Part shown: piece by piece, positions 2,060-62,438 of the stretch | Layout: every line of letters starts with the position of its first letter | Position numbering within the stretch: position 1 is the first letter of the stretch | Source of the DNA: Penicillus capitatus | Lineage: Eukaryota; Plantae; Chlorophyta | Assembly (NCBI GenBank): GCA_965649825.1 | Contig: OZ287713.1 | Coordinates: 56,644-120,643, forward strand | Direction: 5' to 3' | DNA: 64,000 bases | Notes under the pieces: generated by a model | The model's input: only the letters and a program-made list of their open reading frames with translations | Database searches by the model: none | Told to the model about the DNA's origin: nothing | Position numbers and translations under genes: made by a program

Positions 2060-3573
2060 ATGAATGCGCGATGGATGACGCGGCTCGAAGGCGTGCTACG
2101 ACAACTGGACGATCGACGTCTCAAACGATCGCATACGACGCAGCATCCGGAACGAGGGGATCCCCTCCACGTGTCCACACCGAAAGTCACGAACGTGATT
2201 CGAAGGGCTTGGGCTAGGTTGTGGAGGAGACGCCAGAAGGTCAATGCAGTTATACCGTGTTTGCTTCGAATGACTACCTGGGACTCGCTGCACATCCAGA
2301 AATTCGCGAAACTGCTGCGCAAGCTGCAAGAGCGTATGGTATGGGTCCCAGATCTTCGGCCCTTGTCACAGGATACACACATCTCCATGCGAAACTCGAG
2401 AGTAAACTGGCACAGCTGGTGTGCAAGGAATGTGCTCTGCTCTTTCCCACGGGTGGGTGATCGATGCATGGAGACGGCGTCGGAAGAGGCTGAGCGAGTG
2501 CGTGTTGGTCTGCGCACAGGATACGCGACGAACATGTCTGTGTTGGGAGTCTTGTCCGAGACAGAGCCTGTGTCCATCTTCTCGGACGCTCGAAACCATG
2601 CATCGATCATCGATGGCGCAAGACTGGCCGCACGGAACGGTGCAACAGTCCATATATACAGGTCACTCACTTAATGTGCGTCTTCATCTGTTCCAAGACG
2701 ATGTTGCAATTCTGCGTCAGGCATAACGATCTGGCACATCTGGAGGAGCTTCTTGCGCAATGCCCTCTGGAGCACAGAATCGTAGTGACAGAGAGTCTCT
2801 TCAGTATGGACGGCGATTTTGCTGATCTTAGAGTACGATGCACGAGTTCTTATCCTATCCCAACGACGGTGCTGCAGGGACTGATGCACCTTAAGCATCG
2901 CTACGGGTTCCTCTTTGTCGTCGACGAGGCCCATGCCGTGCTTGTCGCTGGCGACAATGGAGGCGGCATTAGTGAACGCGATGGTGTTCAAGCACATGTC
3001 ATCACACGTTGTCGCCGCTCAGATCGCCGATGGATGATGCATTTCAGGTGGACGTCATCGTTGGGACACTGAGCAAAGCGTTTGGCCTGATGGGCGGTTT
3101 TGTATGCACGAGTCGAATCGTGCGAACAATTTTGGCCTCGAGAGGTAGAGGACACATCTTCTCGACCTCTCTTCCACTGCCCATCGTTGCTGCCGCCATC
3201 CATGCCATCGATCTGTCACATCGCGAATCGTGGCGGCGGAAACATCTTCATCAACTCATGCATCGCCTGTGCACACATCTCGACCTCCCAGTGATCAGTT
3301 GGATCGTCCCGCTCATTATTGGATCGGCCGAAAAGGCGTTGAAAATCAGCCAAGCCGTGAAAGCCGATGGATTTTACATTCCAGCCATACGACCCCCCAC
3401 GGTACCTCCCGGAACATGTCGGTACGTCCAATCCATCTTTGCATGTTGACCCACTGACATTTTCTGTTTACAGACTTCGTATAAGCCTCTCGGCTGCACA
3501 TTCTCATCAAGACATCGACAAACTTGTCCATTCTTTAAAGCATCTGCAAGCACTGTCTGTCAAAAGAACTTGA
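2060..3573 (+). CDS. bioF: 8-amino-7-oxononanoate synthase (biotin synthesis), multi-exon
   Basis: Motifs FASNDYLGL, LLFPTGYATN, VTESLFSMDGDFA, VVDEAHA, VGTLSKA and IRPPTVP; short GT-AG introns, e.g. 2171-2217, 2453-2519, 2662-2720. Confidence 0.93.
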
Positions 3574-3617: not shown

Positions 3618-3622
3618 TGTAA
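3618..3622 (+). terminator. TGTAA green-algal polyadenylation signal downstream of bioF
   Basis: TGTAA about 45 nt after the stop. Similar signals follow SF3B1 (11177), DnaJ (11133-11137, minus strand) and PNG1 (19346). Confidence 0.45.
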
Positions 3623-3648: not shown

Positions 3649-4311
3649 TCATGCATTAGCTGCCTGCTTACTGGGAGTCTCTGGCGCCTCCAGTCCTGCC
3701 GCCGTCTCCGTCATCTCCTTGAAACGCGTCTTGATGGCCTCCACCGTCTCGAAATGTTCATCTTTTTTATCCTCCTTCTGAATCAGCTCACCCAAAGCGA
3801 ACGCCGTCCAATACGCGTTTTCGACATTGTACTCTTCATTCTCCGTCGTTCCAGTAAAAATCTCCGTCAGCTTCACAACGGGCATCTCAGCACCGAATGC
3901 TCGGGATTCCGCATGGGAAAAGAGAAAGACAAAGTTATCGAAACCGCATTGCGCGATCTGATAAAGAGCCAGAGCCGACGGCTCATGTACACAGAGGAAA
4001 ATGCAGTCCGCCGGGGCAGGACGTGTGTCAGGGGCGAGACTGAAGAATGCCTGTATGGCATTGAGTTCCGCCGTTGCGGTGGGGTCCTTTGTCTTCGTCT
4101 TATCGCGGCCACAAGCGACGAGCGAAAGATCCGCTTTGTGTAAAATAGCGACGCTGTAGAAGGCATCGCTTTGTTCGGCTGCCTCTGCTGCCAAACGCAC
4201 AAGGTCATCTTGTATCACTTTGAGCAAGCTTCCAATCAATGCTCCTTTGCGCATTGGACCCAGAGGACCGTAAGCGCTGCCGGAAGCAAACTTGCCAGTC
4301 TTGTTACCCAT
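3649..4311 (-). CDS. Nucleoside/guanine deaminase-like protein with a degenerate Zn site; N-terminal MGNKTGK
   Basis: Intronless. AILHKADLSLV, TAELNAI, FLCVHEPSALAL, GFDNFVFLFSHAESR and ENAYWTAF align by eye with the family pattern AAILRKSDLSLV/HGEVH/THEPCSLC/GFDNFYYLFSHEDSR/NAFW. Confidence 0.8.
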   Translation of the reverse strand: MGNKTGKFASGSAYGPLGPMRKGALIGSLLKVIQDDLVRLAAEAAEQSDAFYSVAILHKADLSLVACGRDKTKTKDPTATAELNAIQAFFSLAPDTRPAPADCIFLCVHEPSALALYQIAQCGFDNFVFLFSHAESRAFGAEMPVVKLTEIFTGTTENEEYNVENAYWTAFALGELIQKEDKKDEHFETVEAIKTRFKEMTETAAGLEAPETPSKQAANA

Positions 4312-4381
4312 GCCGGACGGAAGCGGAGATGCGAAGAGAAGATGGCAGAGCGAAGATAAATATACACCACAAATGGTCGTT

Positions 4382-5698
4382 CTAAGCAATCATGCTCTGT
4401 AAGGCGTATGTCAGAATTTCGCGCGCGCCTTGACGTTGACATTGAGGGACGATCTCTCGCGCTGTCTTTTCGTCGACCACGACCTCGATTGCAACAAAAT
4501 GCGAATCGAGCAGAGGTGAGATCGTCGGCGAGAGCGACGAAGGCACAAGGGAACAGATCTAAAAAGATGAACAAGACGACAGGGCAACGAACGAAGGGAC
4601 CTCACCTGATCGATATTCTCCCGTGGGGCATTCATCTTCAGCCCTACCCGACGACGTCCAGCAATGGCGCCTTTGAGCAGAAGAGCGATATCCTCGATCT
4701 TGCATCGCTTTTCGGGATCCGCCCAAGAGTCACGGTTCGCAATCAGACGTGCCGTTGTGTGCATGATCGTATCGATGATGCGTAGCTTGTTGGCTTGGAG
4801 ACTCGTCCCTGTCTCAGTAATGTCCACGATCGCCGAGACCCCAGGAACACGAGCCTTGACCTCTGTTGCTCCCCAGCTGAACTCCACCTTCTTCACACGG
4901 ATGCCTCTCTCATCGAAGAATCTAAGAAAGCCCTCGATGCGTGCTATGACGATGAAATAGACCTGCGTGTTGTGTTCACGAGTTCCGAGACAATGATGCC
5001 ATCTTCCAGATCGTCGACGGTTCGCACGGGGCTGTTCTCATCGACTGCGATGACCCATCGGGCTGAACGCGTTGTGGATTTGGAATAGAGCAGCTCGCAG
5101 ACTTCGACAACATCCGCATTGCTCTCGTTTATCCAATCCAAGCCACAGATCCCAACATCGAGCAGTCCATCTTCGATATAGCGCCTAAGCACAGCACATG
5201 TCGTGTGTGCAATGCAGAAAGCATCCTTTTACGGAATCTCTTGAGATCGAAAGAGCACGAGATTAATGCCGTCATCGTCAATGCCTGGGAAATAGCTGCG
5301 TTCTGACATCTTGAGCTTGAACCCTGTTTATGGCGCGCCTTGCCCCGAGACAACATCTGTGGGTGATGCTTACCTGCCCGTTGGAAAAGATCTTCCGTGC
5401 TTTGCTGAAGACTGCCCTTGGGGAATCCAAACTTTACAACGGAGGCATTTGTACTGTTGCTGTTGTTGCTGATCCATTGCTTCTCTATGTGCGTCGTTGC
5501 CCTGTCCTTCTTGGTCTTCTGTTCTGCTTCGACCGAAAAGCGTCTGACCGAACGGACGGATACTTTGCTTCTCCTTCTTTCGCTGCAACGTGCGCGTCTG
5601 TGTCGTCGACACGGGGTTCGAGTTCTGCATTGTGCGCGAAGGATGGATGGAGTTGCAGGTTTTGAGCAAGACGGACGCGCCGTCATCCGCATGGACAT
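4382..5698 (-). CDS. hisG: ATP phosphoribosyltransferase, long form, with a probable plastid transit peptide (start uncertain)
   Basis: Motifs [40 protein letters not shown] and C-terminal SPTISPL...VAIEVVVDE after splicing; 4 short GT-AG introns. Confidence 0.9.
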
Positions 5699-7341: not shown

Positions 7342-10300
7342 ATGGCGGAGAGCGACGCGTCGAACAAAAAGGGCGCTGAGTACGATACCGAACTCTATGA
7401 TTCGAAGGACAAGTTTTCAGGGTACGTCGACGCGATCGAGGTCGACGACAACGATGAGGATAACGACAACGATAACGACCGTGCAACGCAGCGTAAGAGA
7501 GAAAAACGCATCAAAGCGGCACAGCGGGAAGTACCTCAGATGGAAGACGAAGGGGCGGAACCCGAAGTGTGCAGCCCGTCACTGACAACACGGGCACAGC
7601 GACGTACGTGTGTGCATTCCTGTAGTTTCAGAGTTTCACGATGCCGCGCAAAATCATTGAACGCGAGACGGACTACCAGAAGCGCAAGTATGGACGACAG
7701 ATGTCACCGGAACGCCAGGATGCCTATGCGATGGGCGACCACACGCCAGACGCAAATGTCCGTTCGTATGCCGACACCATGAAGCAACAGATGTTGGATA
7801 TGGAACGCGAGAACACCATGCGCAACATCGCAGAGAAGAGACGGGACGAAACGGAAACGAAAAGGAGCCTCTGGGACAAACCGTACTCGGAAGAGTGACC
7901 ATACCTGTCACATCAGTATTGCATCTCTTTGTCGTTGTGGTTTAGGAAGCCGCGCAAGAATCGTGATTGGAATGATGTCGAGGCGACCCCGACGCCATCT
8001 GGGAGTCGTCGATGGGACACGACGCCTGGATTCGAAGAGACGCCCAAAAAGAACAGATGGGACGAGTCTCCTGCTCTTAAACGCAAAGATATTGACGAAG
8101 CTGCAGCCATGGCGACGAAGAAGTCGAGATCTCGCTGGGACGAGACGCCTGTTGCCAAGGGGGCTGCTCCCATGTTGGGTGCGACGCCAGTGTTGGGACC
8201 CGGCGATGCGACACCGATGATGACACCAAGCATGTTTAGTTTCACACCGATTCCCGGAATGGAGACCCCTTCGGCGGCTGGCATGCCCCAAGTGCCGTTG
8301 ACGCCAGAACAGTATCAACAGGCCAGATGGGAACGGGAGATAGAGGAACGCAACCGACCGTTGACAGATGAAGATCTGAATGCGATTCTGCCGGGCGAGG
8401 AGGAAGGTTACAAAGTGCTGGAAGCTCCAGCTGGATATCAGCCCGTACGTACTCCTGCCAGGAAACTCATGGGCACACCCAGTCCCTATGTTGGAGGTCC
8501 CATGTACAACATCCCCGAAGAAACAACGATGGCAGTGCCAGAAGTGCCCCCGACGCCAGAGGATTTACCAGACATGAAGCCGGAAGATGTCCAGATGTTT
8601 GGCAAACTGCTGCAGGATGTGGACGAGGAGGAACTGAGCGTCGAAGAAGCCAAGGAGCGCAAGATCATGAAACTCTTGCTCAAAGTGAAGAACGGCACAC
8701 CGCCGCAGCGCAAGTCTGCCTTGAGGCAGCTCACGGACAAGGCCAGAGAACTGGGGGCCGGTCCAATGTTCAATCAGATCCTGCCGCTGCTTATGCAGCC
8801 CACACTGGAAGACCAGGAACGTCACCTGCTGGTCAAAGTGATCGATCGTGTGATGTTCCGATTGGATGAATTGGTGCGTCCTTACGTGCACAAGATCCTT
8901 GTGGTCATTGAGCCACTGTTGATCGATGAAGACTACTATGCACGGGTCGAAGGACGCGAGATCATTGCCAACCTGTCGAAGGCTGCAGGACTGCCGTCGA
9001 TGATCGCAGCCATGAGGCCAGATATCGACAACATCGATGAGTACGTGCGAAACACGACGGCCAGGGCATTCAGTGTCGTGGCATCGGCGCTCGGCATTCC
9101 GAAGCTCATTCCCTTCCTCAAGGCTGTCTGTCTGTCCAAGAAATCGTGGCAGGCGCGCCACACGGGGATCAAAATCGTCCAGCAGATTGCCATTCTCGTG
9201 GGCGTCGCCGTCCTGCCCCATCTGAAATCCATGGTCGACATCATCAAACATGGACTGGAGGACGAGAACCAAAAGGTTAAGACCATCACGGCCCTGTCTC
9301 TCGCGGCCTTGGCTGAGGCCGCGGCGCCGTACGGCATTGAGAGCTTCGACGATGTGCTGGAGCCTCTGTGGAAGGGCATCCGGACGCTCCGTGGCAAAGT
9401 CCTGGCCGCCTTTCTCAAAGCCATCGGTTTCATTATCCCTCTCATGGACGCGCAGTATGCCAACGACTACACCCGAGAGGTCATGTTCGTTTTGCTGAGA
9501 GAGTTCCAGACGCCGGACGAAGAGATGAAGAAGATTGTACTGAAGGTCGTGAAGCAGTGTGTCCTGACAGAAGGCGTGGAGGCACAGTACATTAAGGACG
9601 ACATTCTCTCTGAATTCTTTCGCTGTTTCTGGGTGCGTCGTATGGCATTGGATCGCCGTAACTACCGTCAGTTGGTCGATACAACCGTTGCATTGGCAGA
9701 AAAGGTTGGCTGTTCTGAGATTGTGGGTCGCGTTGTCGAAGATCTGAAGGACGAATCGGAGCCTTACCGTCGCATGGTGGTCGAGACCATCGACAAGGTC
9801 ATCACCAAATTGGGCACCGCCGACCTCGATGCGCGATTGGAGGAGTTGCTGATCGATGGCATTCTCTATGCTTTCCAGGAGCAGATCAGCGACGACGCCC
9901 AGGTGATGTTGAATGGATTCGGCACCGTCATCAATTCCCTCAATCTCCGTTCCGCTCCTTACCTCCCCCAAATCTGTGGCACCATCAAATGGAGACTGAA
10001 CAACAAGGCGGCAAAGATCCGCCAACAGGCGGCCGATTTGATCTCGCGCATCGCCATCACGATGAAGGAGTGCAAAGAGACACAGCTCTTGGGACATCTG
10101 GGAGTGGTGCTGTACGAGTACTTGGGCGAAGAGTATCCAGAAGTGCTGGGTTCCATTCTGGGTGCACTGAAGAGTATCGTCAATGTGATGGGAATGGACA
10201 AAATGACGCCGCCCATCAAAGACCTGTTGCCACGTTTGACGCCCATTCTGAAGAACCGTCACGAAAAGGTCCAGGAGAATTGCATCGATCTGGTCGGTCG

Positions 10301-11093
10301 TATCGCCGATCGTGGACCCGAACATGTGCCTCCGAGAGAGTGGATGCGCATCTGTTTTGAGCTGCTGGAAATGCTGAATGCCCATAAGAAAGGCATTCGA
10401 CGCGCAACGGTCAACACCTTCGGCTACATTGCGAAGGCCATCGGTCCCCAAGACGTTCTGGTTACCCTGCTGAACAATCTCAAGGTCCAGGAGAGGCAGA
10501 ACCGTGTCTGCACGACAGTCGCCATCGCCATCGTGGCCGAGACCTGTTCTCCCTTTACCGTTCTCCCCGCTCTGATGAACGAGTACAAAGTCCCCGAGCT
10601 CAATGTCCAGAACGGTGTTCTCAAGGCGCTGTCCTTCATGTTCGAGTATATCGGCGAAATGGGTAAGGACTACATCTACGCCGTGACGCCTTTGCTTGAA
10701 GATGCGCTCATGGACCGAGATCTTGTCCATCGACAGACAGCTGCCTCTGTGGTACAGCACATTGCGTTGGGTGTGGCCGGACTGGGATGCGAAGACGCGC
10801 TGATGCATTTGCTCAACTACGTCTGGCCAAACATCTTCGAGACCTCTCCCCATGTCATCAACGCCGTCAGCGGCGCCGTCGATGGCATGCGTCTCTCATT
10901 GGGACCTGCCATTGTGCTCAACTATCTCCTTCAGGGTCTCTTTCATCCGGCCAGAAAAGTGAGAGAAGTCTACTGGAAGCTTTACAACAATCTCTACATC
11001 GGCGCACAAGATGCGCTCGTGGCATTCTATCCCATGTTCGAGGACGACACGTGCAACACTTATCGCCGCCACGAGTTGGACCTCTTTATCTGA
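7342..11093 (+). CDS. SF3B1: Splicing factor 3B subunit 1
   Basis: N-terminal RWD/TP repeats and highly conserved HEAT repeats ([30 protein letters not shown]); two short 5' introns, then one exon of about 3.1 kb. Confidence 0.98.
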
Positions 11094-11185
11094 AATGCCG
11101 GAAAGATATCAACCATTGTGTTTGTCTTACGTTTACATGAGTTGGGACGGTGTTTGTTTATAGATCATCTGCACGATGTAAACGT

Positions 11186-12160
11186 CTACCCTTCCGTATT
11201 TTCCAGCGCTTCTCGGATCTTTTCCTTCTGCAGCTCATCGAGCCTGTGCGGAAAGATGACATCGAATTGGATCAGCAGATCGCCATGTTTCATCGTCTTG
11301 CTGTTGGGCATACCCTTGCCGCGTTCCACATGTTTGCGCTGAGGTGATGCGACCGTCTTGATCGGAATGTGCAGCACGGTTCCGTCTAGATGCTTCAATT
11401 CCACGACTGTCCCGCAGAGGGCATCGACCAATGAGAGGCGCCGTTTGTGGATAAGATCATCTCCCGAGCGCGTGAAGACGTCGTGGGGTTTCTCCTCGAT
11501 GACGAAGACAATATCTGCCGGGATGATGCCCGGTCGCTCATCTCCCTTCTCCTCGAACGTAATTTTCGTCCCCTGTTTCCAACCGGGACGCACATTGATT
11601 TCGAGAATCTCTGAAACCTCCATGTTTTTGCCGGAGGCATCTCGCAGTTGACGCGAAATCTTCATTTTCTTCGTCGTTCCCGAATAGAGCTCCTCCAGTG
11701 TACATCTGAGAGGATTGGTGATGGGTGCTGCCTTGCGAGAACGTGGCCGGCCAAAAGGATCTCCACCGTGGACAAAGGAGTCAAATCCAGAAGGCATGCC
11801 ATTGAAGTGACTGCCGCATCGGCCGCCAAAGATGGTCGAAAAACCGTCATCGTTGCCGAAGAAGGATCTGAAGATGTCTTCGGCGGACGAGGGTGTGAAG
11901 GCGAAACCGCCGCCAGCTGCACCACCCATACCATTCTTGAGACCATCTTCGCCAAAGCGGTCGTAGATTTCGCGTTTCTGTGGGTCGGACAGCACTTCGA
12001 ATGCTTCGGAAATGTCTTTAAACTTCGCTTCTGCCTCGCTCTTGTTATCTTGGTTCTTATCCGGGTGCCATCGCATCGCCTGTTTGCGATAAGCTTTCTT
12101 CAATGCATTATCGTCGGCGTCTTTTGAAACGCCGAGTATCTGATAGTAATCCCTTCCCAT
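11186..12160 (-). CDS. Type II DnaJ/Hsp40 (DNAJB-like)
   Basis: J-domain with HPD, G/F-rich linker and C-terminal substrate-binding domain ([15 protein letters not shown]); intronless. Confidence 0.95.
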
Positions 12161-31437: not shown

Positions 31438-32642
31438 GGCTGGGAAAGGCGAGCAAGACACGGGGAAACGCCGACTGGTCTGTGTTAATGGATCTCGTCA
31501 CTTGGCGAATTTGTACGACAATAGATTTGAGATCATTACGGCGAAAGGAATCGCTGTCCGAACGGACGAGGCTGATGCATTCTTCTTCGTTCGAAGTTTC
31601 TGAGATCATCAGTTTCGTGATTTCTCAGGTTGTCTCTAGTATGTTCCTCTGAGCGGAATGGAGGGGGCACGTGTTGTCTGGGCAGCACGCAAGGATGACT
31701 AACAGAGCAGGTCGTACGGCTTGGGAGCGTACGGACAGAAGTCGATTCGTAATGGATGGTTCGGCTGGTTTCGCTGTCTTATATCGATAGAGAGGGCATT
31801 GGTGATGTATATTGTTGGCCGGGCCTGCTTCTGTGCTTTCCTATCGTCGAAGAAGCTGTTTTCGGCTGTGGTTAATTCGGAAGTAGGCGAAACGTAAAGA
31901 CATATGGCTACGATAGATAAAGCGATGGGTGTTTTTGTCATTGCATCGGAACAAGACGTCTAGCAGCCAGATGCAGGATTTCATTGCATTAACTGTCCTG
32001 CAGACTCGGAATCTGCATCTGGAAACGGATGTCGCAGACAGGCTGTCATCTCATTTTGACATGTTTGGCTTTTTTCAAGCCATTGATTGAATCCTAACCG
32101 CCTCCACCGTCGTCACTGGGGAGATTTTGATGCATGATCGAGCACCGGTCTTTCTTCCTGTGGCACGTATATCGGCGCGTTTCGAATGGATCCGATCCTC
32201 GGTCTGAAACGCGCCAGTTCATTTCAAGACTTCTTAAGTTTCCCTCAAAACCAACCTGCGTTAAGTGGGGAGAACAGACATTTCGTTTTTGTGTGAAAAA
32301 TTGCCACTCAAAAGACAGTTGATTTAACAAAGCAAAGACGGCAAGCAACACTTCATAGACGAGAAGCAGGGATGGTTGGTCTCCCAAAGCCGTTTTGATA
32401 TCTCTTAGTCGATAGAGAAGTCCTCGGTTTTTTATTTTGATGAAAATGTGACGTATGTGTATCAGGGAACTGTCATGGAAAGGATGATAGAGATTTAAGC
32501 GACATGAAATTCACGTGTATCATACAGATCTGAAAAGACAGCGTGAGAATAGCAGAATAGCAAACCACAAATGATTAGACCTGAAGAAACTTCACACAAC
32601 TGTGGTGTAGGGAAGTTGTCGGGTACAAGAAAAATCGGAACT

Positions 32643-35600
32643 TCAAACAGCATTGAGCCCGATATTTGCGAGAGACAAAGAGAATCGACCGCAGTCCCTC
32701 ATCCACTGGGGAACGTTACGCCATCCCGACTCCAGGACACGTTTGAACTTCTGGTATATCATCGTGCTATCATGTGTTACTATGTTGCAGAAGATGGTAT
32801 GCTCCAGTAGTGAGGTTTGTTCACGTGTATCTCTCGTGACGAACTTCATCGTTAATTTTACAGAAACGAACCTCACGGTCGCATCTCCAAACATTGGACA
32901 TGCGACGTTGAGCAAATCAGAAGGATCAAAGCTTCCTGGATCCAGCAGAGCAACCACCTTGTTTCCCTCATACAGACGGTCTTCTTCCTGGATCATTTCG
33001 AGTTGAGCTCTACTACCGTCTTTAAGAGTCGCTTCAACACTCAGAACTTCGCGAATAGGAGAGTTGCCGCCTCTTATGGGGTGGAGATAAATACTCACAC
33101 GGTGTTTCTGTCGGCACTTCAGAATAAAAATGGGATCTTGCGGAAGAAAATCGTCTGCCATCGTTGGTACTTCCCGGGCCTCGCAGCAATGAAAGGGAAT
33201 GCCTTGGATATCATTATCAGAGATGAGCTCTACGACATCGATGGCAACTGCTAGATTGGCCAGATCCATGTGTTGCAGTGTCAGAGTGACACATCTCAGT
33301 ATCTCATCAAATTTTTGCTCATCCTAGAGCCATCGACCCATCTGTCTTTAAGAACAGAAATCAGATGATCGCTTACATTCTTGCGTCCTGCAGCCATCTG
33401 AGATGTATCCAGACCAGAGTCGAAGATCCCCTTCGTCCTCGCTTTGGCTGCTGTCTGTCTTTCCATCGGTTTGATTCGAAGCAGATTTTTGACGAGACTT
33501 TTTTCCTGTTTTTCTTCGAGGCATTCAATCGTCGAGTTGATATGCTCAGCAGACTGGCGATCTCTTACATCCTCCAGCGACGAACAATCGCCATAGAAAC
33601 GCGTCCCTAGAGGCAAATAATGCAAGACCATGTGTAAAATGACAAGTGGAGAGAGTATGCACCTTTCAGCATCTCGAAGGCGATGATTCCGAACGACCAC
33701 ATGTCTGCAAAGGCGTCCACTGCGATCTCCTTTTTGCCATTGAAAGCAGCTTCAATGATTTCCGGTGCTGCGTAAGCTGGAGTCGCATGGATCTGTTCGC
33801 CTTCCCATGTAGTCGCCGCCGAATCAAAGTCTATTAATTTCCATTTGTACACGTCATTGAAAAAAATGACGTTGCTCGGTTTAAGATCGCGATGCACCAC
33901 ATTGTGGCTGTGTATGTCGACGAGAGCAGCCAGAATCTAGAACGGACAAGATTTTCAAAGAAAATGCCCAACGAAGAACGCAGAAGTGCACCTGGTCCAA
34001 AACAGATCGCCTGTCCATTTTGCTTGGTCGTGCTTTCTTCATCCAATATTCGAGAGTGTCATGTCCTCGTTCAAAGACCAAACAAGGCGGATATTCACAG
34101 TATTCAATGTTGTTCAATAATCTGAAGAGGGCGTTTTCTACGTGCATGGGAATGTATTGTGATGTGCTTGCTTGCAAACATGATCGCTGTGTCTTAGTTT
34201 GCGATGCATCTTCAAGGAATTATCATATAGAAGTCGATTGGTATAGAACTTCAGAACGACGGGGTCTCCTGTATTGATATTTTCAGCGAAGAATACATGC
34301 GCCTTCCTATTCACACTCTTCGATTTTATTAAGTAACTGCAGACCAAGGAATAAGAGAACATACGAGAACAAATCGAGCGAACCTTTGGGCAAAGTATGT
34401 CTCCTTGGTAAGAGTGTTCAACGCGTCCAGTGAACCGGATTGTGTGACTTCGGTCCTAAGAGTGAGCCATTAAGCGAGGAGGGCAACGATTTAGGACAAA
34501 TCACATACGCGCTTAAACAGCGTCGTAGGCCACGGACGTTCGGTGCAGAACAAGGCGATTCTATGACAGCACAGTTTTCGTTATTCTTTTGTTTTGCATG
34601 GATCGTGTACCGTATGGAGGTGGCGGGTTCGAATACGGGGAGGGTTCGTTTGGGGGGTATTCATGGTTGTAAGGACTGAATGGCTCTAATACCAGGCTCG
34701 CACTGGAGGTTCTGGATCTACCCAAACGCGGGGAGGCTTCAGTCGAAGAGTGCTCTAAGCTGCGAGGACTTGATGACTCATCTTCAGTATCTGAATCCCC
34801 CTCCAAGGACACCGATCCTTTACTGTCTAAACATCCATTCTGGTCTCGATCTGTTTCCCCTCCAAGTGGAGGTTCCGCAGCTGTGTGTTTTGGCTGTTCC
34901 CTGTCGCAGTTTGCTTTGATGCTGTATGCGATGACGAGGCGCCGGAACAGATTGGCGTTGAACATTTTCATGCGGATGCGATAGGTTCTCACATGCCTTC
35001 GACGCACCAGAACCACTTCTTTGTCTGAGGAACTGCACCAACGAATGTGCTGCATCTTCATGGATAGCTGACATTGAGTGAAGTCTTGATCAAAAAAATC
35101 GATACTGCGAGGGGTGACGACTGCAGAAGAAGTTTTTTCTTCTGACAGCTTTCTGTGATTGCATTCGACAAGTTGAACACTGAAGGAAGTGCTTTCGCCG
35201 TAGCGCTGTGTGTGGATCATCTCAAGAAACCACCTTCGAGGATCTTCTGGTATCATAAGGCTCTTCTTGGCAAAATAGTCCCGTGCTTCCTTTGCCCAGT
35301 CTATGTATTTTTCCCCAGCAAAACATTGCGATAGAAGTGACGAAGAGCGCTGAACAGTTACTGCTTTGGGAACGCATCCTCGAATCTTGTTAAATAACCC
35401 TGTCTCGCTAGAAAAGGCATCTGATCCATACTCGAAGAGAATTTGCGCTATGCAAAGCTTAAGAACATCATCCACAATGACAGGGAAATGCGTGTTGAGG
35501 TACTCTTGTCTTAACTGGCGATATGACAAGCGGACATAGTCCGCATTCAGCATCTCCGCTTTTGCTTCCCTGAAGAGAATCTGTTTGAAATGCACTCTGA

Positions 35601-36569
35601 CCTGATGGCCATCTTCTTGGATGCCACCAGCGCTCAGCACTGCTGCCAGGTGAGCGTCACTGTCCAGATAAATATCTTCATCCAAAAAGAGCGTGAAGTT
35701 TTTCCAGTTTTGGATACCGACCGACCAGGCTGCCTGTTCGACGCCATCTGCGACAAGTGTCTTTCGATCATAGGCTACTTCGACGGATCTGTCATCCGCA
35801 GACAGCACATGACAGACGGTGATCTCATCTGACTTGATCCGTCTGTTCGATGATTGTTTTTTCATGACATCAATTAATGCATGATGTTTCCTTATCGCGT
35901 CGAGGATTGCGCAGGCCAGCATCCGCACCATGGGATCTTCCTTTGCATCAGATGAAATGCGCTCTATGTATGGCATTAAGCAATGCGCCAAATCCTGCAA
36001 TCAAAAATTTCAGTTTGATGGCAGCGATGGATGCTGTTTACCGTTGAACATGCCAAGCGCTCGGCAAGGATTCTGAACAGCTTCCAGACGCTCCATTTCT
36101 GATAATGCGTGACATTACCTCTCGTCTGTTTCAGAAGCTGCAGGTAGAGCTCATCTCTGAGGTCTTCGATCCCTTGGGTTCGGCGTGCAATAGAGTTGAC
36201 GATTTCTCCGTGGCGGGCCCTGTTTGAAAAACCTCTTGGCAGATTCGTCCATTCAAGGATGTCGTCAAACATTTCGACAGCAGCTCCTGTCTCAGCTGGA
36301 CCCATGTGAATAAGGGTAGTTGACATGAGAGACTGTTGAAGCAAACCCTTTATCCGTCAGTTCTCGTTTGGAACGAGTTTTTGCTCACCGAGGAAGGTCG
36401 CAGTCTGGCAGATAATGAACGGGCGAGTTTATCGGACGACCCTTCAGATGTAGCAGGAAAACTAGTTATCTGCAAATATCGCCCGTACAAAATTAGAGCT
36501 TTCGAAAAGCGAGCTTACGCCGAGGTCGCACAGTAACCCATCAACGTCGTCGGCGATTCCCGCAGACAT
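32643..36569 (-). CDS. MyTH4-FERM + protein kinase + unknown C-terminal domain fusion protein
   Basis: MyTH4 (LRDELYLQLLKQTRGN..W), FERM (FKQILFRE...LSYRQL..EYL...FPV..DD..KLC..QIL) and kinase (VVLKFY, HRDLKPSN, LIDFD, TPAYAAPE, ADMWSFG) are linked in frame by 47-53 nt introns. Confidence 0.82.
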
Positions 36570-38004
36570 GGTTTCGCGTGTCGTCCACTGGACAGAAAAA
36601 ATCGTCGCCAATAACGTACAAGATAACCGACACTTCACCTGCTGTCGTGGGGGAAATGGCCAACCTGATATTTGAGCAAGGAAACACGGAGCAGGCAGGA
36701 CGTGAATAGCAAAAGTGTAAACGAAGGCACACAATTTTCTTGTGGTACGTTACAATTTCACCCTTTATCTCAGCACGTACGACACTTATGTATGTGCATC
36801 ACGGTTGTGTAACCGCTCTGTTTATGTCAGCGCCGCACACTCCACTGTTATCATCTCTGTTCACGTTTTCGAAATCACGCTATCCAGCGGTGGGTATCCT
36901 TTCCTGAAGCAACTTCAGGATGTTGCTACTGTTTAGTATTTTGAAGTTACCTGGAATAGCTAGTTAGTCTCTATGAACGAAAGGAGAAGAAAGAAACTGG
37001 ATAATGACAACGGATGAAGCAACCAGAGTTTACCTGTCCGCAGAGGTAGGTTACAAACGAAACGATTACAGTTCCGCCTTCACCAGCAACCGATGCCCAT
37101 TCCAGTTCAAACGGCGGTTGCCGCTGCCATCCGTATATCTTTGACAAGAGTTCTTTGCACCAAGACAGTCCAAGAAACACGCAAAGGTATAATGAAAAGA
37201 ACTGATGACTTCTGGTGACTTACTGGGTGTATGCCTTAGCTGAAAACAATGCACGTATGAAGAGTTGGGTCGATGGACGCACTGAAATCACCGAATCCGG
37301 CAATCGGTTTGGATGACTCGATTTTGCAGCTTGGGACAGATTTGGAATAAGAAGTCTCCTTATGTCAGCTCTATCTCATGCACTGTCTCCATCTATCCAT
37401 CAGCAGACCCAGATGCACATTAAAACGCATCTCTCATTGCGTTACGGAAAGAGAACCTGGAAGTGCGAACGGCATAGGTATTCGATGCTTTTTAGGAAGG
37501 GCAGTTCCCAGGTAAACAGCATTCGATGGTGACACATCCGCAAACCTCACGCAACGGTATCCTTGATTCCTTTCTACAAGTGCTCAAATGCGCCATCTCT
37601 GTCAAGCTGACAAGCTAAGTGAGCACTCTCCATGCTGTATGTCTAAAGAATGACAGATTCTCCTTCCTCTACGTGGAAAACTGCAGCATTCCAATACTCC
37701 ATGTATCGGCGCACATACAACAGTTGTATCAACATCCAGTGTACGTATTAATGCATTCCTCGAAGCTTCCAGAAGAGTATTGCAATGCCCACATGGAGAA
37801 ACTTGTTTAGCTGAGTTCCTTTTTGCTGCCGTACACTTTAGACGTGACATGATCCAGCCATCACATCATGACGTGACTGCTAGAACCTCGTACTCGAATC
37901 AACCGAGATGTGACATCTGTGTCGGACACGGACAGAATTGCAAGACCATCAACGCATTTCGCTCAGTCGTTTTGTTCAAACCTCAGACGTTGCATCGTAT
38001 AGAC

Positions 38005-55016: not shown

Positions 55017-58000
55017 ATGTCCGTCGTACGGTGGTGACATGCAACCCTCGACGTCATCCAGTGCGCTCTTTCGTTCGAGCAGCGATCGAAAAGGTGTTCC
55101 CCGTCGCATCACGCGTCTGGCGCAATGCGTCGAAGCATTCGCCAGCGAACGAGGCGGCGGCGACGCCATCAACAGGTCACACTGTCCGCGACGACTCCAT
55201 CCGCGACAAGCTCTTTTGCTGCAGCATCCTGGTCGCCAACAACGGCCTGGCAGCGGTGAAGTTTATCCGGAGTGTGCGAATGTGGGCCGTTCGTGCGTTC
55301 GGCGACGATCGAGCCGTCACGCTGGTGGCCATGGCAACGCCTGAAGATATCCGAATCAACGCCGAGCACGTTCAGCTGGCGGATCAGTTCGTCGAAGTGC
55401 CGGGCGGAACGAACAATAACAACTATGCCAATGTCCGCCTCATTCTGCAAACGGCAGAGCGAGCAGAGGTCGACGCCGTATGGCCAGGATGGTGATTATC
55501 ACTCCTCGCATCTCTGGGCTTCCCACGAGGGCGGGGCTGTCGTGCAGGGGACACGCATCCGAGAATCCGGATCTCCCGAGGGCTCTGAGCGAAACGCAGC
55601 GTGGAATTCGATTCCTGGGACCGCCGTCCGGGGCGATGGCGGCACTTGGAGACAAGGTTGAGCTCCCCCACCTCATGTCGTGCTCACCAGGTGCCTCGGT
55701 CTCAGGTCGGTTCGACGATTCTGGCTCAGGCGGCCGGCGTGCCCACGTACCCCTGGAGCGGAACCGGAGTGCAGATCTCCTACGAGGAATGCGACGGCGT
55801 CATTCCGAAGGAGATCTACGAGCGCGCCTGCCTCCAGGCAGAGAATGCCGTGCATCGTTGTCGGGCCATCGGCTACCCCGTCATGCTCAAGGCCTCGTGG
55901 GGAGGCGGAGGAAAAGGGATACGGACGGTGAGATCGGACGCCGAAGTGGAAACGCTTCTGCGACAGGTCCGAGCGAAGATGCATCTCTCCTGAATGCGAC
56001 TGGCGCTACTGCGTGCTAGGTCGAAGGAGAGGTGCCCGGCTCGCCCATCTTCGCCATGAAGCTGGCATCCAGATGTCGACATCTGGAGGTTCAGCTGCTC
56101 TGCGACCGCCACGGAAGTGTCTGCTCTCTCTTCTCCCGGGATTGCAGTCTCCAGCGCCGTCATCAGAAGATCGTCGAGGAGGGACCTGTCCTCGGTGTCG
56201 CATCGGCCATCCTGGACCAGATGGAAAGGTGCATCTTCACGCTGCGAAGTGGCCCTGCGGAATAACAGCGCGTCTGGCTGCAGATCTGCCCGTGCCCTGG
56301 CGAGGTCGGTGGGGTACGTCGGCGCAGCAACGGTCGAATACCTGTACAGCGTGGAGGAGGGGCGCTACTACTTCCTGGAGCTCAATCCGCGGCTCCAGGT
56401 AGAGCACCCGGTCACCGAGGGCATCACGGGAGTGAATCTGCCTGCGTGTCAAGTGATGGTCGGTATGGGCATCCCGCTGCATCGCATTCCCGACATTCGC
56501 GTCCTCTACCACGAAGACCCTCAAGGAGACAGTCCCATCGACTTCGAGGCCCACGAGAGGCGGAGTCCGGATGGGTACGTCGTGGCCGTGCGCCTGACCT
56601 CGGAGAACGCCAACGATGGATTCAAACCGACGTCCGGCGACGTCGACGAAGTGCACTTTCGACCGACGTCGGACGTCTGGGGGTACTTCTCGGTGAAGTC
56701 CGGAGGGGGAATTCACGAGTTCTCGGACTCGCAGTTCGGCCACCTCTTTGCAAAGGGCCCGACGCGGCAGGAGGCCATCCGATCGATGCTCATGGCGTTA
56801 AAGGAGGTGAAGATTCGGGGTGAGATACGCACGACGGTCGACTACATCATCGACATGATCCAGGAGCCGGACTTCCTCGAGCAGCGCATCCACACGGCAT
56901 GGCTGGACAACCGCATCGCCCGACAGGTGACGGAGATGCAGAGAGTGCCCCTCTGAGTTCGTCTCCTGTCTTCAGATCACGTCCAAACGTCCCCCCTGGC
57001 ACCTGGCGCTGGTCTCCGGGGCCGTCGTCAGAGGAATGGAAGCCTTCGCCGAGAGGTCGGCCGAATACCTGGAGATGTTGAAGAGGGGCCAGATACCACC
57101 GTCGTCGCTCAGTCTCACGCGGCTGGAGGAGGAACTGGTGCTGGACGCGACGAAGTACAGCGTGGCGTTGCTCAAACAGGGTCCCCATCGTTATCGGGTG
57201 CTGCTGAACGGCTCGTCTCTGGACTGCGTGGCGAGGAGGCAGGCCGACAGCGGCGTCTTGCTGCAGGTTGACGGACAGAAGCACGCCGTCTACGCGGAGA
57301 ACGAGGCGATGGGCGTTCGGCTGTCCATCGATTCGTGGACGTGTCTCCTGGCGAACGAGTCCGATCCTTCGCAGGTCTTGGCGCCCTCCGCTGGAAAGAT
57401 CCGTCGCTACCTGGTCGAGGACGGAACGCGTCTGGAGCCGGGCGATCCCTACGCCGAGCTCGAGGTGATGAAGATGCTGATGCCGCTGCTGGCGCCTGCG
57501 GCCGGAACTGTGCGCTTTCAGCTGCTAGAAGGCGCCGTCCTGAACTGCGGAGAGCTCATCGCCAGGTCCGTCCATCCAGCGGCAGGGACGAGAGGAGACT
57601 GCTGTTGCGCCTAGGTTGGAGCTGGACGATCCCAACGCCGTCTCGAGAGTCGCGGTCAGCGAAGAGAAGTTTCCGGAAGAGCTCGGTCCTCCGCAGGTTA
57701 TCAGCGAACGCGTCGATGATCGATTTGCCCTGGCCCACGAGGCCGCTGCCGATCTCCTGGCCGGATACGAGCGCGACGTGCCTGCCACGGTCGCGGAGCT
57801 TCTGAGCTGTCTGGACACCGAAGACCTGGCCTTCCTCTCATGGTCGAGGAGATTCTCCGTGGCGCAGTCTCGGATGCCGGATCGCCTGAGGCGGACCCTG
57901 GAAACGATCATGCAGCGCCACGACAACTCCACCTTCGACATTGTCCCGGACGTCGCTGGCACGGAGTTCCCGGCCAGCGACCTGCTCCGGTGCATGAAGC

Positions 58001-61000
58001 AGCATATGGATGTCGAACCGTCCGCAGAGCGCCCCGCCCTCGAAGCCACACTCGAGCCACTCTTGTCCCTTGCCCGAGAGCACGAGGGCGGAGACTACAT
58101 CCGACACATCACTCAGAAGCTCCTCGAGCAGTACCTCTTCGTCGAGGAGAAATTCCAGCACCAAAGCTTGGCCACCACAGAACGCGACATCATCTACGGC
58201 CTCCGACAGGTACGGAGATCACCCACCTGTCTCTCGGCAATGGCTCGGCGGTGCTGATCAGGAGCACGGGGACGACCTTCAAGGCGTGCTGGATTTGGTG
58301 ATGTCCCATCAGGCCCTCGAGAGGAGGTCGGAGTTCGTGCTGCATCTGCTGGCTCACGTCGTCCTTCCTTCGCCTGCAAGCTACCGTCCCCATCTGCGCC
58401 GCCTGTCGGCCCTCCACTCCTCCAACGCCGCCCAGATCCTGAAGAAGGCGCAGCTCCTTCTCGAACAGAGTCTGTTGGCCGATCTGAAACAAGCCGTCCG
58501 TCGCTGCCTGTCTGGACTGGATCTCTTCTCTGCCGGCCCGGATCGGAGAGGACCGTCCGTCTCCAGAAAGGACACTCGGACGGAGGGCCTCTACAAGGGG
58601 CTCGGCAGCGGAAGCCCGGCTCCGTCCACAATGGCTCAGGTGGAGATGCAGAAGATGGAGATGCTGGTCGAAGCTCCAGCCGCCGTCGACGACGCTCTTG
58701 CCTCGCTCCTGAGCCTTCCTCGAGTCCGCGTCCCCGAGGAGACACGATCCGCTTCGGATCACGTGGCGACGGCGGGCGTCGAGCACCGTACACTGATGGT
58801 CTACATCCAGCGAACGTATCATCACCGAATCCTCGAGGAGCCCAGAATAGTGCAGCACAGTCATTGCACAGTCGCCTCCTGGGTGTACGGCGATGTCTAC
58901 GAGAAGGAGGTCGAGCACCACGGGGTCATGATTGTGCTCGAGCAACTGAGGCACCTCAAAGAGGGAATGGACTGTGCCAGACAAGCACTGGGCCAGCGCA
59001 ACAGAACGACGACGTCCGGGTGTCTCCACATCGCACTGACAGGAGAATCGGGTGACCGATTCCGTCTCTTCGGCGAGGCGGAAGATCTCTGCCGCGGCGA
59101 CATCGACGAGAGAGATGAGGCGAACGATCCCTTCGACGAAGACGAACGTGTTCGGTCGAGTCTGACAGACGAGGACATCACGCAACTGGCCTCCTCTCTG
59201 CGAGCACTGATCCAGACGATAACGGCCGAATGCAGAGCGATGGACTTCGACACGGTCTGCGTCGTCATCCAGACGGCAAAGCTCCCTGTGCGCAAGGGAT
59301 ACAGATGGGATGTCAGCCGTCAGCGCTACGCATCGCACTTCACTCTCCAGTGAGAATCGGATCTCTCCTGCGACGATCGACGGGTGTGCTTCGCAGGCAG
59401 GTGGAGGGTCCAGTGGCCGAGGCACTGGAGCTCTGCAAGCTGGAGCATCTGCCGTTGCACCACGCTCCCTCCCGGAATCGCCAGTGGCACATCTACACAG
59501 TCGAAGAGAGAGCAGGGCGCGGAACGGTCATCAAGAGGCTCTATCTCCGCGGACGGATTCATCAGATTGGCAACACCCCTGAATTCCTGACGGCCTCCTA
59601 CCGGGGCATAGCGGCGGACCTCGCTGCTGCGGTGGTGGACGAGATCGGGGGGACTCTCTCCCGATGTCTCGAGGAACTGCTGCGCGTGCAGCACGGACAG
59701 GATGACGACGGTGCGACGTCCATCGACTGGTCGCACATCTTCCTGTCGCTCTTGCCTTCCGTGGATATCGGAGGAGATGCGACTGGCAGTGTGGTGGCCG
59801 CTCTGCGCTCTGCATGCGCCCGGCGGACGAACCGACTCGCAGGCGATCTGCGCACCGCCTCCGTGGCCCAGTTCGAGTTGAGAATCTGCGCGGCCGGAGA
59901 AGCCGGTCCGTGGAGAGTTATCGCGTCCCTTCCCACGGGACACGAGGCCGGAGACGAACACGTGGACGTCTACCGCGAAGAACGATCTCCGGAAGGGCTT
60001 CGATACCGAGCCGTCTCGCAGCCGCCCGGCGCGTTGCATGGCCGCCCTGTTCTGCAGCCGTACGGGGCCCTGAGTGCTCTGCAGCAGAAGCGCCTGTTGG
60101 CTCGGAGACACGGCACCACGTACTGCTACGATTTCCCTGCAGTTTTCGCAAACGCTCTGAGAGAGATCTGGACGGAGAGAGCTGTGGCAGGAGAGCCGTG
60201 CTCTACGCCGCCGCCCGGTGCACTCGTGGAAGCAGCGGAGCTCGGATTCGATGGACAGGACTCCCACGCGTCGCCCTACGCTTGGAAGCTGCGGAGGCTG
60301 CCTGAAGGATCTGAGCGTCTCGCTGTCGGCATGGTCGCGTGGACGATGACGGTCAGATCTCCGGAAGCTCCTGATGGACGCTCGCTCGTTGCCATCGCCA
60401 ACGACATCACCCACCATTTCGGTGCATTCGGGCCGAAGGAGGATGCGCTCTTTCGATCCGCCGTGGAGCACGCGCTGGACCATCGCCTTCCGGTCGTCTA
60501 CATCGCTGCCAACTCTGGAGCCCGCGTCGGTCTCGCCACGGATGTCGGGGAAAAGCTGAAAGTACAGTGCGCGCAGGCCGGAACTCGATTCACGTGCGAC
60601 GGCTTTCTGTGCAGGTCGAGTGGACGTCGCCCGAAGACCCTCTCAGAGGACCTGCTTACCTGTACCTGGAGGACGCCGATTACCAGCAGCTGACGAGCGG
60701 CGGCGGCGAGGGGCGCAACGCTCCTGCGGTCGTGGCCGAAAAGAAGAAGGGCCATTGGAGGATCACCGATGTCGTCGGGAGCGAAGACGGCATCGGCGTG
60801 GAATGCCTCTCGGGCAGCGGGGCCATCGCGGGATCCTTTGCGGAGGCATTCCGGAGAGGGATCACCATGACGCTGGTGACGGGTCGGACGGTGGGGATCG
60901 GCGCCTACCTGGCCCGGCTGGGACGACGATGCGTCCAGTCGCAGCAGCCCATCATCCTAACGGGGTACCAGGCGTTGAACAAACTGCTCGGCCGCGAGGT

Positions 61001-62438
61001 CTACTCTTCGCAGCTCCAGTTGGGCGGTCCCCGCATCATGGGCGTCAACGGCGTCTCCCATCACGTCGTCTCGGACGATCTGCACGGCGTCAAGACGATT
61101 CTGAAGTGGCTCTCGTACACTCCGTGCCTGCTCGGCGGATGGCCCAGCCGCTGTCCGACCGCAGATCCAGTCGATCGGGGGATCGATTACACTCCGGACG
61201 AGGACGGTAAGCTGGATCCGCGGCGAGCCATCGCGGGGTGGACCTCCGACCTTCGGTGGGTGTCTGGACTCTTTGACCGGGGAAGCTGGTTGGAAGTTCA
61301 GGAGGGATGGGCGCAGACGGTGGTGACGGGACGCGCTCGACTTGGCGGAATTCCTGTCGGCGTCATCGCCGTGGAGACGCAGACGGTGTTCAAGACCGTC
61401 CCTGCGGATCCCGGAATGGCCGAATCCGCCGAGCAGCGGCTGCCTCAAGCAGGCCAGGTGTGGTTTCCCGATTCCGCTCTGAAGACGGCCCACGCCATGG
61501 AGGAATTCAACCTGGAGAGCCTGCCGCTGATCATTCTGGCGAACTGGCGCGGGTTTTCCGGCGGACAGCGCGACCTCTTCGAAGGCGTCCTTCAGGCAGG
61601 GTCCCTCATCGTCGAGCACCTGCGCGCCTTCAGGCAACCCGTCTTCGTCTACCTGCCTCCGAAGTGCGAGCTCAGAGGCGGTGCCTGGGTGGTGGTCGAC
61701 TCGAAGATCAACGACGCCATGGTGGAGATGTACGCCGATCCCTCCGCCAGGGGGAACGTGCTGGAGCCCGAAGGCATCGTGGAGATCAAGTTCCGGAAGG
61801 CGGATCTGCTGAGGACGATGCATCGACTGGATCCGGAGTTGAAGGCCATGGATCAGCGGGGAGCCGCCCGTGCGGACATCGCAGAGCGGGAACAGCTGCT
61901 GCTGCCAGTCTACCACCAGGTCGCCCTCCGTTTCGCCGAAATGCACGACACGCCGCGCAGAATGCAAGAGAAGGGTGTGATCCGGGGCGTCGTTCAGTGG
62001 AGGCAGGCACGAGCCTTTCTGTGCCAGAGACTCAGGCGCAGACTTGGCGAGGAACGCATCTTCCGAGACATGGGCGCATCGGACTCGCGCCTCTCCCGGT
62101 CGGCGATGAAGGAGATGCTGAGAGCATGGTACATGCAATCGGGCGATGGTCAGGGGGAGGACGACTGGGACAAGGATGACGCGGCGCAGAAGTGGATGGA
62201 ATCCGAGAGCGGTCGCAACAGAGTCTCGGCCGGGCTCATGTCTCTCCGTTCCGCTGTCGCCTCTCGCCAAGTGCACGAGATGCTTTCATCTGCCGAAGGG
62301 ACTGCCGGTCTGATCGACGCACTGAGAGCCGCCGCACAGCGGGATCCGCAGATCAGAGACCTGCTGCAGAATATGCAGTGCCCGGGGCCCGCATTGCGCG
62401 GAAACGATGTCGAACCTGTGGAACATCGGGACGGTTAA
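55017..62438 (+). CDS. ACC1: Homomeric acetyl-CoA carboxylase (BC-BCCP-CT), probably cytosolic
   Basis: [41 protein letters not shown], biotin motif [28 protein letters not shown] and [12 protein letters not shown]; no obvious transit peptide. Confidence 0.97.

Follow-up and report, generated by a model that had tools for sequence, protein, structure and literature searches.

The 64,000-nucleotide stretch of Penicillus capitatus DNA considered here (GenBank assembly GCA_965649825.1, contig OZ287713.1, positions 56,644 to 120,643; referred to as the window) carries on its minus strand, at 3649..4311, a complete and intronless coding sequence. By direct reading, homology and a structural model, it encodes a guanine-deaminase-like protein of the cytidine-deaminase-type (CDA) fold from which the zinc ligands are missing. 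The open reading frame (ORF) starts with an ATG at 4311-4309, runs through 220 codons and ends with a TGA at 3651-3649; the protein reads MGNKTGKFASGS...PSKQAANA. A program-made list of ORFs extends the frame upstream to a TTG at 4389, and between the preceding stop of this frame and the MGN codons no further ATG occurs in frame. The start has a purine at -3 and a G at +4. The frame is unbroken and collinear with all orthologues from the first residue to the last, with no frame breaks, and the C-terminal end (...K-x-A-A-N-A, then the stop codon) is kept among them. An identical 220-residue protein is found in a public collection (P0402, from a 303 kb metagenome contig in ENA). Two ORFs that overlap the gene, 3754-4143 (+) and 3873-4208 (-), lack any Pfam match and are regarded as spurious. 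In the C-terminal tail (3652-3690, minus strand; residues ∼208-220), T-P-S-K conforms to T-P-x-K, a proline-directed, CDK-like phosphorylation consensus that is also seen in the related proteins P0002 (TPSK) and P0006 (TPNK), and not in P0003 or the Caulerpa protein.

In the family to which the protein belongs, 176 full-length members serve as an active reference set for column conservation, and in these the zinc-ligand His, both zinc-ligand Cys residues and the catalytic Glu are each conserved at 100%; H-G-E and P-C-x-x-C are retained by nearly all of the ∼190 relatives. The window protein keeps only the Glu, as E82. T80-A81-E82 (4066..4074, minus strand) takes the place of H-G-E, with Thr at the position of the His, and P111-S-A-L-A115 (3967..3981, minus strand), which follows a retained H109-E110, takes the place of P-C-x-x-C, with S112 for the first Cys and A115 for the second. 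A preliminary description of this DNA had reported an intact, intronless ORF beginning MGNKTGK, the motifs TAE and PSALA, and the loss of the His and both Cys with the Glu kept. Direct reading bears out all of these sequence details, and the ligand loss proves common to the orthologues, given which the pattern is, as judged by sequence comparison, far beyond chance.

The same combination recurs across a wide range of divergence. The two motifs are TAE and PSPMA in P0002 (55% identity to the window protein), TAE and PAAMA in P0003 (56%), and TSE and PNAIS in the protein of Caulerpa lentillifera (P0005, EukProt gene model g8450.t1; ∼40%); the fragment P0006 has TAE and PNPMA, P0007 has PAE and PNCLG, and P0011 has SPE and PCCVS. 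Ligand loss with retention of the Glu is therefore seen in orthologues of 55%, 56%, ∼40% and ∼31-36% identity. Within this clade different small residues occupy position 112 (S/A/N/C) and position 115 (A/S/G), E82 is invariant in all seven members, and all five Bryopsidales-type sequences, which share 37-56% identity, carry D70, T80 and E82.

The changes reach beyond the metal ligands. Other residues that are invariant in the family, namely N70, G81, S117, W121 and the I-P-H-D loop, have given way to different ones in the window protein and across most of the clade, and they may have lined the ancestral substrate pocket, by analogy with other deaminases of this fold; the family Asn at position 70, conserved at 97%, is presumably substrate-binding on the same analogy. 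It is replaced by D70 (4102..4104, minus strand), which sits within a basic loop, G-R-D-K-T-K-T-K-D-P (residues 68-77), that is specific to the clade and largely kept in four of the five Bryopsidales-type sequences. The equivalent of the IPHD loop differs even within the clade (AEMP, DDGET, AGKTG, THQSS). The positions that are kept include P77, E82, H109-E110-P111, L116, G123-F124 (part of G-F-D-N-F), F131, Y161, N165 and W168. Because D70 and T80 are themselves invariant in the Bryopsidales-type sequences, the old site looks remodelled on alignment, not randomly eroded.

Homology to deaminases is weak at the level of Pfam and strong within the protein's own subfamily, and the comparison leaves it as a real relationship. 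PF00383 matches the window protein with 18.2 bits (E=0.0023), below the 25-bit gathering cut-off, and matches the orthologues with 20.7-25.8 bits or not at all. In contrast, phmmer aligns the window protein with a bacterial relative that has intact H-G-E and P-C-S-L-C motifs (P0004) at E=2.4e-25, and HMMER, run exhaustively against 1.84 billion cluster representatives, returned 150 matches, 56 of them with E<1e-10. A single-sequence search of PDB sequences with the window protein gave no match, whereas a family profile reaches two Bacillus subtilis structures of GuaD (1wkq and 1tiy; E=1e-8), followed by guanosine deaminase and TadA; neither the window protein nor the active family is covered by an NCBIfam model. 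An AlphaFold2 model built from a 53-sequence alignment (mean predicted local distance difference test score, pLDDT, 85.2; predicted template-modelling score 0.82) has the CDA alpha/beta fold, and Foldseek pairs it at probability 1.0 with ADAT2, TadA, NE0047 (a guanine deaminase of Nitrosomonas), the Arabidopsis guanosine deaminase GSDA and yeast cytosine deaminase yCD. As modelled, the protein is the fold-retaining deaminase homologue that had first been proposed. Residues 1-13 have a pLDDT below 50 and are predicted to be disordered.

This disordered segment begins with a candidate N-myristoylation signal. Codons 1-7 (4291..4311, minus strand) encode MGNKTGK, with Gly2, a small residue at position 6 and Lys7, and the assignment draws on PROSITE PS00008, G-{EDRKHPFYW}-x(2)-[STAGCN]-{P}, together with conservation in the clade. 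All six full-length clade members start M-G-[N/A/G]-[K/N/G]-x-[G/T/S]-K, with Lys7 invariant, and the dozen or so residues that follow diverge (position 8 is F, L, P, Q, T or D). An MG start that satisfies PS00008 is found in these 6/6 proteins against 3/191 other family members (Fisher p=1e-9, a value that ignores relatedness). The bacterial relatives start ∼20 residues later and lack the disordered extension. In three orthologue contexts and in the two distant members inspected, no earlier in-frame ATG separates the preceding stop from the MG codon, and the gene model of Caulerpa likewise opens with MGNKSSK. In short, the start suggested earlier fits a predicted signal that is conserved throughout the full-length clade, and the possibility of an upstream start finds neither an upstream in-frame ATG nor any conservation before the M-G.

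Some apparent exceptions have simple explanations. Longer N-termini annotated for P0001 and P0403 run through the last exon of a HisG gene in another frame, and that of P0003 uses a GTG start; they are artefacts of prokaryotic gene calling, and these false extensions, of 88, 98 and 27 residues in P0001, P0403 and P0003, mask the MG terminus in public protein sets. A protein starting MGNRDAS with intact H-G-E and P-C-x-x-C (L013 95-757 and L020 2773-3258) was considered as a myristoylated, still active intermediate and set aside: it lies on a bacterial contig, with MazG 15 nt downstream and CysG upstream. Its MG is a coincidence or not the true start, and the pattern by itself is no evidence of myristoylation.

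Neighbour-joining trees recover the seven-sequence clade in 80-85% of bootstraps and the five Bryopsidales sequences in 100%. The branches of the clade are long, with a mean distance to active members about twice the distance among active members. The N-terminal extension, which was left out of the tree, points the same way, and the eukaryotic clade that joins the loss of catalysis to the gain of the MG extension looks monophyletic on the available sequences. A scan of metagenomes with clade-specific peptide patterns found only active bacterial relatives and did not enlarge the MG clade. A eukaryotic transcript from Tara Oceans (P0141, ERR1712087) was examined as a possible eighth member and rejected, as it grouped with the clade in 0/200 bootstraps. 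P0141 has H-S-G for H-G-E and E-L-S-P-L-D-M for E-P-C-x-x-C, and starts MGMSQCV, with Gly2 and a Cys at position 6; judged from its sequence, it may represent an independent loss of catalysis accompanied by an acylation-type N-terminus.

The gene is under strong purifying selection and is not decaying. Against two copies with 94% identity, L005 and L028, the ratio of nonsynonymous to synonymous substitution rates (dN/dS) of the ORF is 0.082 (dS 0.216, dN 0.018) and 0.076 (dS 0.234, dN 0.018), respectively. For comparison, the last exon of HisG gives 0.042 against L005 (dS 0.374, dN 0.0156) and SF3b1, a spliceosomal gene of the same window, gives 0.002 (dS 0.426, dN 0.0009). Between the ORF and the 55-56% orthologues dS is saturated and dN is ∼0.35. 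As the loss of the ligands is conserved in orthologues and dN/dS is ∼0.08, the gene behaves as one for a pseudoenzyme and not as a pseudogene. The proposal that the protein is a pseudoenzyme gains comparative support here, from orthologues that share both the His/Cys/Cys loss and the MG start and from values that speak against the neutral evolution under which the proposal would fail. L005 and L028 (ENA ERZ26696514, contigs of 814 kb and 1.23 Mb) are near-identical copies of the locus, with a mutual dS of 0.02 and a dS of ∼0.22 to the window, and the SF3b1 of L005 is 99.9% identical to that of the window; they look like a sister lineage, represented by two haplotypes or closely related strains, from a single metagenome sample that is apparently rich in algae.

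The active proteins from which this clade departs form a family of ∼200-residue 'nucleoside deaminases' with the motifs NPLWHGE, THEPCSLCLSAITWAGFDNFYYLF and IPHD. They are found in Alphaproteobacteria and other bacteria, in ascomycete fungi (Hirsutella, Biscogniauxia) and in a cryptophyte, and the window protein is 28-42% identical to them over its whole length, including the C-terminal Y..N.FW segment. JGI mislabels the active relatives as 'TadA'. Their gene context is more specific. On a metagenomic contig (L002 762-2709) the active deaminase comes last, after a cupin gene and ureidoglycolate lyase, and in Pseudaminobacter salicylatoxidans (L010 1-6594) it comes last after xanthine dehydrogenase, HIU hydrolase, allantoinase/OHCU decarboxylase, cupin and ureidoglycolate lyase. 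The active gene closes a purine-degradation cluster in two of the three bacterial contexts examined, the third being uninformative. Because of this context and the match of the family profile to GuaD, the active relatives probably constitute a clade of CDA-type guanine deaminases that has gone unrecognised.

The surroundings of the gene in the window are those of a eukaryotic chromosome. An intronless gene for spliceosomal SF3b1 (7929-11093, +), a DnaJ gene (11186-12160, -) and genes with introns lie on the same stretch and, because of the spliceosomal SF3b1 and the intron-bearing neighbours, the host DNA can be read with confidence as nuclear and eukaryotic. SF3b1 is 87% identical to that of Caulerpa lentillifera, its closest named relative, and 80-83% identical to those of other chlorophytes; Caulerpa belongs to the Ulvophyceae, order Bryopsidales. 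By these comparisons the host is a green alga of Bryopsidales type, with SF3b1 placing it no more finely than to the order. On the plus strand a class I/II aminotransferase gene, which reads as 8-amino-7-oxononanoate synthase-like, converges on the ORF, its stop at 3573 lying 75 nt from the stop of the ORF. The G+C content of the window is uneven, from 0.61-0.64 at the ends (1-2000 and 56001-62000) to 0.46-0.47 in the middle (32001-38000).

Directly upstream of the ORF on the minus strand is the last exon of HisG, encoding the C-terminal regulatory domain of ATP phosphoribosyltransferase (4382..4558; Pfam HisG_C E=1.3e-13), which ends in a TAG at 4384-4382. The spacer between this stop and the ATG is 70 nt long (4312..4381, minus strand) and, read directly, contains no ATG, AG or TGTAA. 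The distance is 71 nt in L005 (8193-8265), 69 nt in L001 (7931-8001) and 183 nt in L006 (331-515), and the order DnaJ, SF3b1, HisG and pseudo-deaminase is kept on the contig of a 55% orthologue. The stretch is enriched in TGTAA, a candidate poly(A) signal of chlorophytes (76 occurrences against 52.7 expected; 0/100 shuffles reach 76), which is found 45-85 nt past the stops of the aminotransferase, SF3b1 and DnaJ genes, at 3618-3622 (+), 11177-11181 (+) and 11133-11137 (-). The interval from the HisG stop to the pseudo-deaminase stop is free of TGTAA, and the first one after both is at 3468..3472 (minus strand), 177 nt past the pseudo-deaminase stop. The gap was set aside as proof of a shared transcript, because, by chance, ∼65% of 730-nt segments would lack this 5-mer. 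Taken as a whole, the arrangement hints at a bicistronic nuclear mRNA for HisG and the pseudo-deaminase or, failing that, at an extremely compact promoter. Bicistronic nuclear transcripts are documented in other green algae (PMC7896298), but leaky scanning through the long multi-exon HisG ORF would be unusual.

What would such a protein do? The explanation judged best, with a probability of roughly 0.55, is that it is a pseudoenzyme: a guanine-deaminase-like protein of the CDA fold that does not catalyse deamination and may attach to membranes via a myristoylated Gly2. The zinc site has been lost through the changes His80 to Thr, Cys112 to Ser and Cys115 to Ala, with the fold, the Glu, H-E-P and G-F-D-N-F kept. 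N-myristoyltransferase is universal in eukaryotes and, from what is generally known of this enzyme and of methionine aminopeptidase, Met1 would be removed and the exposed Gly2 acylated by the host transferase. The acyl chain, carried on a flexible linker of ∼20 residues, would then tether the folded domain to a membrane or to a partner protein. Since K4 and K7 are the only lysines near the N-terminus of the window protein (no clade member has more than two), and no clade member has a palmitoylatable Cys in its first 12 residues, this binding is expected to be weak, reversible, switchable or assisted by a partner, and not a firm anchor; the clade-specific basic loop could, speculatively, add to it. 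The protein is likely to form a dimer, with itself or with a catalytic relative, through the interface typical of the fold, because CDA-type guanine deaminases are obligate dimers and because L116 and the G-F-D-N-F segment that follows the former PCxxC helix are invariant in active and inactive members. In its predicted role it would act as an adaptor or regulator, which the lost residues favour over a ligand sensor; the scaffold that the preliminary description offered as its other option is plausible.

Several points weigh against this explanation: (i) 'membrane-anchored' may overstate the weak affinity that myristate gives with two nearby lysines and without a palmitoylatable Cys; (ii) the monophyly of the clade comes from neighbour-joining trees of long branches, for which long-branch attraction is possible; (iii) the statements about the dimer interface and the pocket are drawn from alignment alone; (iv) an ATG only 70 nt behind the HisG stop clouds both the structure of the transcript and access to that ATG; and (v) the retention of the Glu, H109 and E110, with D70 and T80 invariant, could mean a site that is remodelled and still functional.

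Among the alternatives, an unlikely one is that the protein is a dead subunit in the manner of ADAT3: paired with another CDA-fold enzyme or with an active paralogue, it would recruit or regulate this partner, for example at a membrane. The obligate dimerisation of CDA-fold guanine deaminases fits this idea, Tad3/ADAT3 offers the precedent (Iyer et al. 2011, PMC3239186), the model's closest structural matches include ADAT2/ADAT3, and L116 and G-F-D-N-F are invariant in active and inactive members alike. However, no active green-algal paralogue is among the matches, where the active eukaryotic forms are fungal and cryptophyte (the host genome itself was not searched), and Tad3 shows the opposite pattern, retaining the zinc ligands and losing the Glu.

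Another improbable alternative keeps the pocket in use: it would bind a purine or a new small molecule without turnover, while the myristoyl group positions or switches the sensor at the membrane. E82, H109, E110, Y161, N165 and W168 are retained, and the invariance of D70, T80 and E82 across Bryopsidales sequences of only 37-56% identity lends the idea some support. Against it, the 97%-conserved Asn, G81, S117, W121 and the I-P-H-D loop are lost, and the equivalent of the loop varies within the clade; the loss of the presumed substrate-binding Asn, the Trp and the loop in particular weakens the 'ligand sensor' of the preliminary description, which is not supported as it was stated. From the alignment, retention of the ancestral purine ligand is doubtful.

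It is more improbable still that the protein remains an enzyme with a rebuilt site, either metal-free or using another metal, for which D70, E82, H109, E110, C103 and C107 are the candidate residues. The general-acid/base Glu is invariant in 7/7 clade members despite their long branches, and several polar residues near it are conserved, but none of the residues that stand in for the three ligands coordinates zinc, and positions 112 and 115 vary. To our knowledge, every characterised deaminase of the CDA fold needs a His/Cys-Cys-Cys zinc site for the activation of water.

A more elaborate version of the sensor, to be regarded as highly speculative, is a myristoyl switch of siphonous algae, in which a metabolite, purine-related or other, would be sensed at a membrane by the remodelled pocket (D70, T80, E82, H109, E110) together with the basic loop (RDKTKTK), and bicistronic expression with HisG would couple the protein to histidine and purine metabolism.

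The least probable reading, that the MG terminus is not real owing to an upstream exon, a fusion to HisG or an unexpressed relic, can point to the little room for a promoter in the 70 nt past the same-strand HisG stop, but it is opposed by the different frames of HisG and the ORF in the window (a 73-nt offset), by the stop codons that intervene and rule out read-through in L001 and L006, where HisG and the ORF share a frame, by a spacer without an AG acceptor, by conservation that begins exactly at M-G while the upstream regions are unrelated between species, and by the MG start of the Caulerpa gene model; the relic is ruled out by a dN/dS of 0.08. A read-through fusion is rejected on these frame differences and intervening stops, and a simple spliced fusion is unlikely too.

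The pseudoenzyme favoured here can be set beside four kinds of known protein. GuaD (B. subtilis BsGDA, 1WKQ/1TIY; Nitrosomonas NE0047) has the same fold, belongs to the same helix-4 division and gives the best profile match among solved structures. It differs in that H-x-E and P-C-x-x-C bind a catalytic zinc, where the window protein has T-A-E and P-S-A-L-A, and the window protein has an additional MG extension of 20 residues, a longer C-terminal helical tail and only 13-21% identity to solved structures. In GuaD, His53 is a zinc ligand, and CDA-type guanine deaminases have entered eukaryotes before, as the nematode genes gda-1 and gda-2 (preprint 10.64898/2026.04.09.715363). The 'nucleoside deaminase' subfamily is the direct parent of the window protein: its ∼176 full-length members keep the zinc ligands, the conserved Asn and the IPHD loop and have no MG extension, and it is their gene context that suggests their substrate.

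Tad3/ADAT3 resembles the window protein as a dead member of the same fold division that is kept by selection as a subunit of a dimer (PMC3239186). It keeps the zinc ligands without the Glu, whereas the window protein does the reverse. Tad3 occurs throughout the eukaryotes, works on tRNA and is not known to be myristoylated. Further deaminase-fold proteins that are inactive, from protists, algae and plants, were described by Iyer et al. 2011 (PMC3239186), namely the Ectocarpus deaminase-Tudor protein, PITG_06599-like proteins, Perkinsus versions and plant RibD copies. They are likewise lineage-specific, eukaryotic and predicted to be inactive, with binding or regulatory roles proposed, but they belong to other clades (CDD/CDA-derived, RibD, toxin-derived), and none is described as GuaD-like or as having a myristoylation signal. 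A limited full-text search of the literature found no pseudoenzyme that is N-myristoylated or guanine-deaminase-like, and hence none of the latter kind that combines the loss of three zinc ligands with a kept Glu and a conserved lipidation signal. Inactive proteins of the deaminase fold are already known, Tad3/ADAT3 being the best example, and it is the combination of ligand loss, a kept Glu and a lipidation signal that is apparently undescribed.

If the pseudoenzyme explanation is right, the gene would be a clean natural example of an enzyme that became a non-enzyme together with a change of cellular address, in the setting of a poorly studied algal order, the Bryopsidales (Caulerpa and relatives). 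Given its tight and conserved spacing to HisG, the locus may be a nuclear case of bicistronic expression in an algal class other than those in which such cases are documented. For the parent family, which is functionally uncharacterised, the gene context offers a testable assignment as guanine deaminases.

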